DNA from: Phallusia mammillata
Lineage: Eukaryota
DNA: 64,000 nucleotides
Assembly: GCA_965637545.1 (NCBI GenBank)
Contig: OZ281495.1
Span: forward strand, 12,214,001-12,278,000
Direction: 5' to 3'
Shown piece after piece: positions 4,201 through 5,633 of this stretch. The notes beneath the pieces are model-generated. The model was not told the DNA's origin. It worked only from the letters and a program-made list of their open reading frames with translations, and made no database searches. Each line of letters opens with the position of its first letter. Position 1 is the stretch's first letter. The translations under genes and the position numbers were made by a program.

Positions 4201-5633
4201 ACATCCATCAAACATTTGATGGCAAAAATGAAACATTGTTAACAGCGGTCTGCTGAGTACAGCAGCACTTTTTAAAATTGCACGCCAATTTTGTTTGGTT
4301 GAACATGGAAATTTTGCGCCAAAGGCATTTAGTTGTCCTGTCATGACCTATATTACTTGCTTTGTGCCTACTGAAATTGATCCTGCATGCGTGCACACAG
4401 GACATGTTGGTCCTACCCGTCAAAATTCTCATTGAGAACTGCTGTGTTCTGCAGACTAGTTTAACAACATTAAGCTCACCTTAATATACATTAAAAGATG
4501 CTTGTATCTTGACATCATCTCATCATGTTTACCAAGTTTAAAATTGATTTTTGTCATTTGTTTTAATGCTTTAAATCCCCATTCTCCCTTTTCTTCTTCC
4601 AACTCAAGGACCTAAAAATAATAATTCATTACAGGAAAAGTTTATGACTATTTTTTAAACTTTTAGTTTTCAGCACACAAAACAGACCTTTTGAAAACTT
4701 TCCAAAGCAAGCCTTGTGTCATCTTCTTTTAGGGCTTTAGAGTTGTAATATTGATTTTCGAGATCAACATCAGGTTCTGAGTTGTCATCTTCCGAATATT
4801 CCTGTTTTAAACAAGTACATTTGAACTTTGCAAAAATGTATGCTTAAATTTATAACATTACCAATAAACCGTACAAGTGATAATTAACTAGCTGGTAATT
4901 AGAAGATATATACAATAAAAACTATAAAATCAAAAGTACAAAACATTAAGCTGCGATTTTTTGTTTATTGGCGCATGCGACAATAAACGTAATAAAAGAC
5001 ACAAAACAAGTACCTCAACGGGTTGATGGCAGATAACAGAAATCGCTAGCGTAACAAAATGTAAGAGGATAAACAAGACAAAAACATTAACACAAATACG
5101 TACGAAATGGAAAATTCGACGATATGCAAATTAGGCTAGGCCTGTATGGATGGGTCATGAAGTACCCAGTCAGGGACTTGCCTTAATGACGATAGAGCAC
5201 ATAATAGCGCAAAAAGTACAATGGGACAAAGCTAATTTACATAAAGTACAATTAGTCCACATTAAGCTGCACGACAGTGCACACTGTTTCGACCTATAAG
5301 GTCTCATCAGTGCAGCTGGTGACGAGAGATCGGCCGCATTGGCTAGTGTAGCCATCCAACGGCACTCCAGTTTGTTGGGAGCAACAGGGTACAACCCCAT
5401 GCATCACCTAGTTTGTGCGATGCCACAACTGGGCATACAGCACAGATGAAACTGGCTCACAATGGCCAAGCAACTGCTTGGGAACCACAGTGAAGTCGGC
5501 TCAGTGTCACAGTATCAATGCATTAAGTTTGATACAATAAAAACTCGAAAAGCAAAAGTACTAGATATAAAGTTGTCATACTAACCAAGTCATAATCAAC
5601 GTCACTGTCGCACATGAAGTCACCATCATCCAT
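1225..5633 (-). CDS. COPS2: COP9 signalosome complex subunit 2 (CSN2/Alien/TRIP15), 11 exons, 442 aa
   Basis: Exons in transcript order: 5586-5633, 4688-4801, 4480-4611, 2877-2997, 2696-2814, 2460-2634, 2267-2340, 1927-2084, 1620-1800, 1447-1505, 1225-1372; all GT-AG with matching phases, total 1329 nt. Translation [44 protein letters not shown]...WGFKALKQM...[24 protein letters not shown]...[17 protein letters not shown]...[48 protein letters not shown]...[25 protein letters not shown] follows animal CSN2 from end to end (PCI domain at the C-terminus). Confidence 0.97.
3280..3580. mobile_element. Mutator-like (MULE-type) MITE in COPS2 intron 3
   Basis: About 50-bp imperfect TIRs (AGAGCTACTAACACGATATGTTACACCTGATCCAAAAGTGCTTAATTTTC at 3290; reverse complement ending at 3577), flanked by a perfect 9-bp direct repeat GATTGGTAC (3271-3279, 3581-3589). 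Confidence 0.7.
5255..5323 (-). ncRNA. Type I hammerhead ribozyme-like motif in COPS2 intron 1 (sense orientation)
   Basis: Minus strand reads GTCACC-AGCTGCA-CTGATGA-GACCT-TAT-AGGTC-GAA-ACAGT-GTGC-ACTGT-C-G-TGCAGCT-TAAT-GTGGAC: intact CUGAUGA and GAAA core, 5-bp stem II, 5-bp stem III ending in a GUC cleavage triplet, 7-bp stem I with a bulged distal extension. One deviation: an extra G (5272) between C17 and stem I. Confidence 0.7.

Follow-up and report, generated by a model that had tools for sequence, protein, structure and literature searches.

Amniotes possess intronic hammerheads (Rfam HH9 / HH10 type) that exist as single copies and are conserved between species. The hammerhead repeats Schistosoma Sm-alpha and newt satellite 2 represent the seed lineage of the Rfam family RF00163 (Hammerhead_1). 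From Penelope-like elements, a minimal hammerhead of the dimer type is known, which is distinct from the canonical hammerhead of retrozymes.

The metazoan non-LTR retrozymes are repeats of ~150-450 bp that form short tandem arrays (Cervera & de la Pena 2020; PMC7229834). [quoted passage not shown] In full-text searches, we found no description of a tunicate retrozyme, the sole mention of tunicates being that of nine Rfam hammerhead loci in Didemnum (PMC8704543). Penelope-like elements occur as partial tandems with an adjacent inverted, 5'-truncated copy and with a tail of 30-40 bp at one end only (PMC8557442). In vitro, their reverse transcriptase uses two adjacent internal start sites, and both target strands are cleaved and extended (PMC11167929).

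We analysed a hammerhead motif in a 64-kb window, this being the whole stretch of DNA under analysis. The segment from 5520 to 5263 is, with high confidence, a single insertion of less than one unit of a young, non-autonomous element of the metazoan non-LTR retrozyme type, probably mobilised by Penelope-like machinery and carrying a ribozyme that is most likely disabled. The features of the locus are as follows.

4802..5584, minus strand: COPS2 intron 1, ~783 nt, with an approximate acceptor position.
5585..5749, minus strand: COPS2 exon 1 (5' UTR and first codons), from spliced RNA contigs; its 5' splice site (5584) precedes the element by 64 nt.
5263..5520, minus strand: solo arm of a 282-nt retrozyme-like repeat, 258 nt, from the genome search and the alignment to the unit.
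5265..5317, minus strand: type I hammerhead motif, read from the sequence, the Rfam alignment and the minimum free energy (MFE) fold.
5272..5272, minus strand: insertion of a single base, read as G in the transcript and C in the plus strand, directly 3' of C17 and private to the window copy.
5255..5262, minus strand: flanking intron DNA outside the repeat, which pairs by chance with GUCAC 5323-5319; other copies are without such a flank.
5260..5266, plus strand: CATTAAG, the left of two 7-bp direct repeats; it overlaps the last bases of the element, and the pair is a marginal candidate for a target-site duplication.
5521..5527, plus strand: right copy of the same repeat, equally marginal.

The position of the motif in the sense strand of COPS2 intron 1, as given in an earlier note made from the sequence alone, was upheld. 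RNA-assembly contigs are spliced at the end of exon 1 (5585) onto the next COPS2 exon, and the downstream exons, matched individually, correspond to COP9 signalosome subunit 2 in the PDB (E values of 1e-28 and 1.8e-15). The insertion accounts for about one third of intron 1, and splicing of COPS2 across this intron is normal in the RNA assemblies.

The hammerhead layout described in the earlier note is present base for base on the transcribed strand. Read on the minus strand, the 5' strand of stem I (AGCUGCA, 5317-5311) pairs with UGCAGCU (5271-5265) and is followed by the CUGAUGA core (5310-5304), stem II (GACCU 5303-5299 / AGGUC 5295-5291, with the loop UAU), GAAA (5290-5287) and stem III (ACAGU 5287-5283 / ACUGU 5278-5274, with the loop GUGC). 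C17 is at 5273, which places the nominal cleavage site between 5273 and 5272. The extra nucleotide noted after C17 is real: it is G 5272, it stands between C17 and N1.1 and puts the copy out of the register of a type I hammerhead core, and the Rfam model renders it as a deleted C3. The MFE fold of the window copy also holds a distal helix, GUCA(C)/(G)UGGAC, which had been read as a UAAU-bulged distal stem I docking on loop II. This helix is fortuitous because unique intron DNA begins beyond 5263 and no other copy has that flank; GUCAC (5323-5319) belongs to the element and its partner GUGGAC (5260-5255) to the flank.

As proposed in the earlier note, the copy number was determined by a genome search, in which positions 5530..5130 of the window (401 nt) served as the query against its own genome (240 Mb, 312 contigs). 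The search returned 2,376 first-look candidates, and the scored copies, which were found on all large contigs, were all 96-98% identical to the window. The motif thus belongs to a dispersed family with more than 1,000 copies. Family copies are 99-100% identical between themselves, and many of them stand in tandem at a 282-nt period (TRF: period 282, 99% matches). We took as reference a unit from a genomic locus (L005) that starts after GUC, position 1 being the nucleotide that directly follows the hammerhead cut. It coincides with the majority consensus built from 41 full units, which are, at the median, 99.3% identical to the reference. Judged from this uniformity, the family appears to be very young and, apparently, very recently active. 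The genome-wide pattern counts were as follows.

Exact 44-nt hammerhead: 268 matches in the genome, 0 in the reversed control.
Loose core pattern, nearly all of the same lineage: 860 matches, 2 in the reversed control.
Cleavage-junction 24-mer with at most one mismatch: at least 1,249 matches, 0 in the reversed control.
Extra-G variant: 1 match, the window copy itself, and 0 in the reversed control.

The consensus reads AGCUGCA-CUGAUGA-GACCU-UAU-AGGUC-GAAA-CAGU-GUGC-ACUG-UC up to the cleavage site and UGCAGCU beyond it. A type I hammerhead is defined by the core C3-U4-G5-A6-N7-G8-A9, G12-A13-A14, A15.1-U16.1 and H17 in register with three helices, of which stem I is open and stems II and III are closed. 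The consensus conforms to this definition, with all core positions, the G10.1-C11.1 pair, a stem I of 7 bp, and stems II and III of 5 bp each, and in a context of 100 nt the three-stem hammerhead is the MFE fold. Beyond an internal loop of 11/8 nt, the consensus fold continues into a distal helix, GGCCGAU/AUUGGCU, which is formed with unit positions 16-22. In the consensus, GUC is directly followed by UGCAGCU; the extra base at the scissile position of the window copy is private and no conserved feature. The 282-nt unit is putatively non-coding and highly structured; folded as a circle, it reaches -97.8 kcal/mol (z = -3.5). Its GC content is 49.6%.

Its descriptive features place the family with the metazoan non-LTR retrozymes (PMC7229834). 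It shares with them a canonical type I hammerhead in a putatively non-coding repeat of ~300 bp, the dispersed short tandem arrays (here with a period of 282 and 0.9-4.4 units), the absence of LTR, PBS and PPT, target-site duplications of more than 4 bp, a GC content just below 50%, the presence in transcriptome assemblies, and the company of resident Penelope-like elements with minimal hammerheads. There are also differences. The arrays are short, with at most 4.4 units among 30 loci, and most of the insertions sampled are head-to-head inverted pairs, an arrangement that the accounts of retrozymes in PMC7229834 and in bioRxiv 10.64898/2026.07.22.740005 do not mention. Furthermore, the present family is known from the genome and from contigs.

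In unit coordinates, the window copy runs from 36 to 282 and, after the inserted G, continues from 1 to ~5-9; it is 98.1% identical to the repeat. Five differences separate it from the consensus: three transitions (5433, 5413 and 5356) and two insertions of a single base, T 5384 and G 5272. By simple arithmetic, the chance that five differences in 258 nt strike the hammerhead of ~59 nt is ~70%. The copy is without the inverted partner arm seen in most sampled insertions, and no second copy of the repeat was found within the 64-kb window, in agreement with the absence of a partner copy reported previously. The flanking CATTAAG repeat is suggestive at best, being marginally above chance, since 6% of random flank pairs in the control share at least 7 bp. 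The insert between the two flanking repeats measures 254 nt, which is 282 minus a 28-nt tail. We also observed that the 5' end of the window copy (5520, unit position 36) adjoins the second of two classes of reverse transcription start sites described below (unit positions 33-39), as do the 5' ends of four other arms (units 23-39; L016, L009, L007 and L021). Such 5' ends may result from a roadblock at this place or from an RNA that ends there.

Of the two origins offered in the earlier note, a retroelement relic or a domesticated intronic ribozyme, the first is borne out by the 258-nt copy and its 98.1% identity to a repeat with more than 1,000 copies; the second found no support. A domesticated intronic hammerhead would be single-copy and kept at the orthologous position, whereas the present one is multi-copy, is flanked by a direct repeat and carries a private mutation. 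With the amniote HH9 / HH10 hammerheads it shares its place in an intron of a conserved gene, in sense orientation, but it differs from them in its recent origin within a family of more than 1,000 copies, in its private, putatively disabling change, and in showing no match to those Rfam models.

Several features of the window copy point to a ribozyme that is most likely disabled. Because it is a single hammerhead, it cannot release a monomer. Its private G at the scissile position is predicted either to bulge N1.1 or to pair C3 out of the core; the predicted fold is the latter, in which G 5272 pairs with C3 and stem I grows to 8 bp. In the hammerhead of a Penelope-like element, mutants of C3 abolish cleavage (PMC11167929). 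In addition, stem I lacks its native distal part: the insertion stops ~7-9 nt past the cleavage site, so that the family's distal helix, which needs unit positions 16-22, is missing.

These features also bear on the foremost alternative, according to which the window copy is a working, slow ribozyme that cuts the COPS2 pre-mRNA in intron 1 and attenuates the gene or tunes it in some other way, as the beginning of a domestication. The core is complete, each of the three stems is there, the orientation is sense and the 5' splice site is near; moreover, an alternative fold, which bulges out the extra G and leaves C3 unpaired, has a predicted energy of -17.8 kcal/mol, compared with -17.9 kcal/mol for the consensus hammerhead fold. 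We nevertheless consider this alternative unlikely. The MFE fold engages the very C3 that cleavage needs, the native distal stem I is missing, COPS2 is spliced normally across the intron, and a private change in a copy with 98% identity to an active-looking family gives no sign of conservation. The feature is then best described as an ordinary, probably dead transposon copy, and not as a new regulatory ribozyme in an essential gene.

A related idea is that the copy survives in an essential gene because the G at the scissile site blunted self-cleavage, either as a selected inactivation or as a residual slow ribozyme that attenuates the COPS2 pre-mRNA. We regard it as very unlikely. If it were true, disabling changes in the hammerhead would, among copies of equal age, be more frequent genome-wide in sense intronic copies than in antisense or intergenic ones.

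The reading of the locus as a retrozyme-type insertion is also supported by the architecture of the family. At 30 loci, the insertions are short arrays of 0.9-4.4 units, and most of them are head-to-head inverted pairs. Of 16 pairs, 15 are flanked by target-site duplications of 10-14 bp; in the control, the 95th percentile is 7 bp. Solo arms are without clear target duplications. Once the duplications are trimmed off, two narrow classes of outer (3') arm ends emerge, one at unit positions 2-11 (median 7) and one at 33-39 (median 35), and 13 of the 15 flanked pairs have one end of each class. The inner 5' ends are variable. The prevalence of the inverted arrangement is also illustrated by the first 100 exact hammerheads listed, among which neighbouring pairs are head-to-head in 21 cases and tail-to-tail in one. 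Nested 24-mers were counted genome-wide as well (1,249, 413 and 149, the last for unit positions 30-53), but these counts overstate the short 3'-end class because related subfamilies share the hammerhead and not the downstream sequence, as seen in the contig depth profile; the end classes given above rest instead on the 15 pairs resolved by their target-site duplications.

We considered whether the extra G of the window copy is a non-templated base added at a jump of the reverse transcriptase from one end to the other of a monomer after its cleavage. There was no enrichment: genome-wide, two junctions carry an insertion of 1-4 nt, namely, the window copy and one with a T elsewhere, versus one at a control position 4 nt upstream. 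This origin is not supported.

Taken together, the clean insertions display, at base resolution, the signature of Penelope-like elements, that is, a tail from two start sites and inverted arms. Like those elements (PMC8557442, PMC11167929), the family has an inverted 5'-truncated copy beside the main copy, partial tandems, and a one-sided tail of ~30 bp that fits two adjacent internal start sites of reverse transcription downstream of the hammerhead, with use of both strands. The start sites would lie just ~7 and ~35 nt past the ribozyme cut. This architecture represents independent support for the proposal that retrozymes are mobilised by Penelope-like elements (bioRxiv 10.64898/2026.07.22.740005), here for a retrozyme that appears to have been active until very recently, in a compact ~240-Mb genome.

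Candidate partners reside in the same genome. There are 90 GIY-YIG matches, with open frames of up to 973 aa in which Pfam confirmed both RVT_1 and GIY-YIG domains. The 973-aa elements carry a minimal hammerhead with a helix III of 1 bp and a palindromic UUAA loop. The hammerhead of the unit differs from it in being canonical and monomeric with a helix III of 5 bp. Furthermore, the unit, unlike Penelope-like elements, encodes no reverse transcriptase or endonuclease. Mobilisation by Penelope-like elements is consistent with the architecture and with the resident reverse transcriptase/GIY-YIG frames. The unit has no sequence similarity to the sampled elements: in a comparison with 30 GIY-YIG loci with 1.5 kb of flank each, which is a thin sampling, we found no common sequence, neither in a pseudo-LTR or reverse transcription start region nor elsewhere, except for an adjacent insertion at one locus (L033).

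Two observations on these elements may be added. The minimal hammerhead lies ~240 nt after the stop of the open frame (L039:2060-2115; also in L040-L044 and L050) and has a 7-bp stem I, ACAGAAA/UUUCUGU. Two loci, L032 and L033 (G000:C1:4030545-4033652 and 4270906-4274013), have in common a 314-aa open frame with a GIY-YIG match only, the reverse transcriptase being absent within the frame; at L033, a retrozyme arm with a variant stem I is inserted ~1.2 kb downstream of it.

We propose the following course of events. Tandem copies would be transcribed, and the canonical type I hammerhead would cut out 282-nt monomers, which might be ligated into circles, by analogy with the family described in PMC7229834. 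The reverse transcriptase/GIY-YIG endonuclease of resident Penelope-like elements would then copy the unit RNA into DNA at new sites, with reverse transcription beginning at either of the two internal sites, ~7 and ~35 nt downstream of the cleavage site. Extension of both cut target strands would give rise to head-to-head, 5'-truncated arms with a one-sided tail of ~28 nt and target duplications of 10-14 bp. The window copy would represent one such arm, with a 3' end of the "7" class and a 5' end at unit position 36, in sense orientation and 64 nt inside COPS2 intron 1.

Alternatively, the family might be an ordinary satellite or SINE-like repeat in dispersed form, spread by duplication at the DNA level or by LINE machinery, in which the hammerhead is a passenger. 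The failure to find a partner element with unit sequence among the 30 loci would agree with this, as would the solo arms that miss clear target duplications and some arrays that resemble segmental duplicates. On contig C3, four head-to-head pairs with an identical spacing of 117 nt are located within 1 Mb (4162293/4162410, 4236766/4236883, 4553228/4553345 and 5090020/5090137) and are probably one insertion copied by segmental duplication. However, the insertions are dispersed, with duplications of 10-14 bp and variable 5' truncation, and their two-site 3' ends and head-to-head arms are, in the literature, specific to Penelope-like elements. A SINE origin was examined and rejected: no tRNA-like part was found in the unit, and no poly(A) at the insertions. 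Moreover, no part of the unit is better kept or more abundant than the hammerhead, in the genome as in the RNA assemblies (1,249 junctions versus 149 copies of unit positions 30-53), which speaks against a passenger. We consider this explanation extremely improbable.

Taken alone, the hammerhead in the window is statistically weak as a motif. The Rfam check suggested by the earlier note did bring up RF00163 on the window copy, with 20.9 bits (E = 0.011 on the 301 nt searched), but this is below the gathering score of 34, and at the gathering level there was no match in the whole 64-kb window. A canonical copy of the family reaches 22.8 bits, likewise below that score. A scan of the whole genome with RF00163 returned no match and was uninformative, its own controls being equally silent. 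The family shares with Schistosoma Sm-alpha and newt satellite 2 a type I hammerhead in a repeat of ~300 bp, and among the Rfam families RF00163 gives it the highest score. It departs from them in stem II, loop II and helix III, with an insertion of 8 nt relative to the model, and for this reason the score stays below gathering. The sub-threshold score and its E value notwithstanding, a chance match to the small hammerhead consensus is refuted, because the motif is part of a repeat family with 268 exact 44-nt hammerheads, compared with none in the control.

The unit is present in 18 public runs from five studies. Four of these runs, from four studies, were examined, and three of the four are RNA, as shown by the spliced COPS2 contigs that they contain. 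All unit contigs in the four runs carry the canonical junction without the extra G. They cross the cleavage site and run from unit position 36 back to 6, which indicates that they stem from other loci with full or tandem units. The runs consist of assembled contigs, a form that does not display RNA ends, monomer size or circularity.

In all four runs, the summed contig depth over the hammerhead-bearing 75 nt (5273-5348) was several-fold above that over 5349-5520, and several contigs diverge at 5317-5348. The excess in depth and the divergence suggest further subfamilies, or host transcripts, that share the hammerhead module alone. Beyond 5348, some RNA contigs (runs X1, X3, X4 and X15) continue into a very short inverted arm that ends in ...CACUGUCUGCAGCUUAAUAAA and is followed by poly(A). 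At one locus at least, a polyadenylation signal seems to be supplied by the element's end or to lie next to it.
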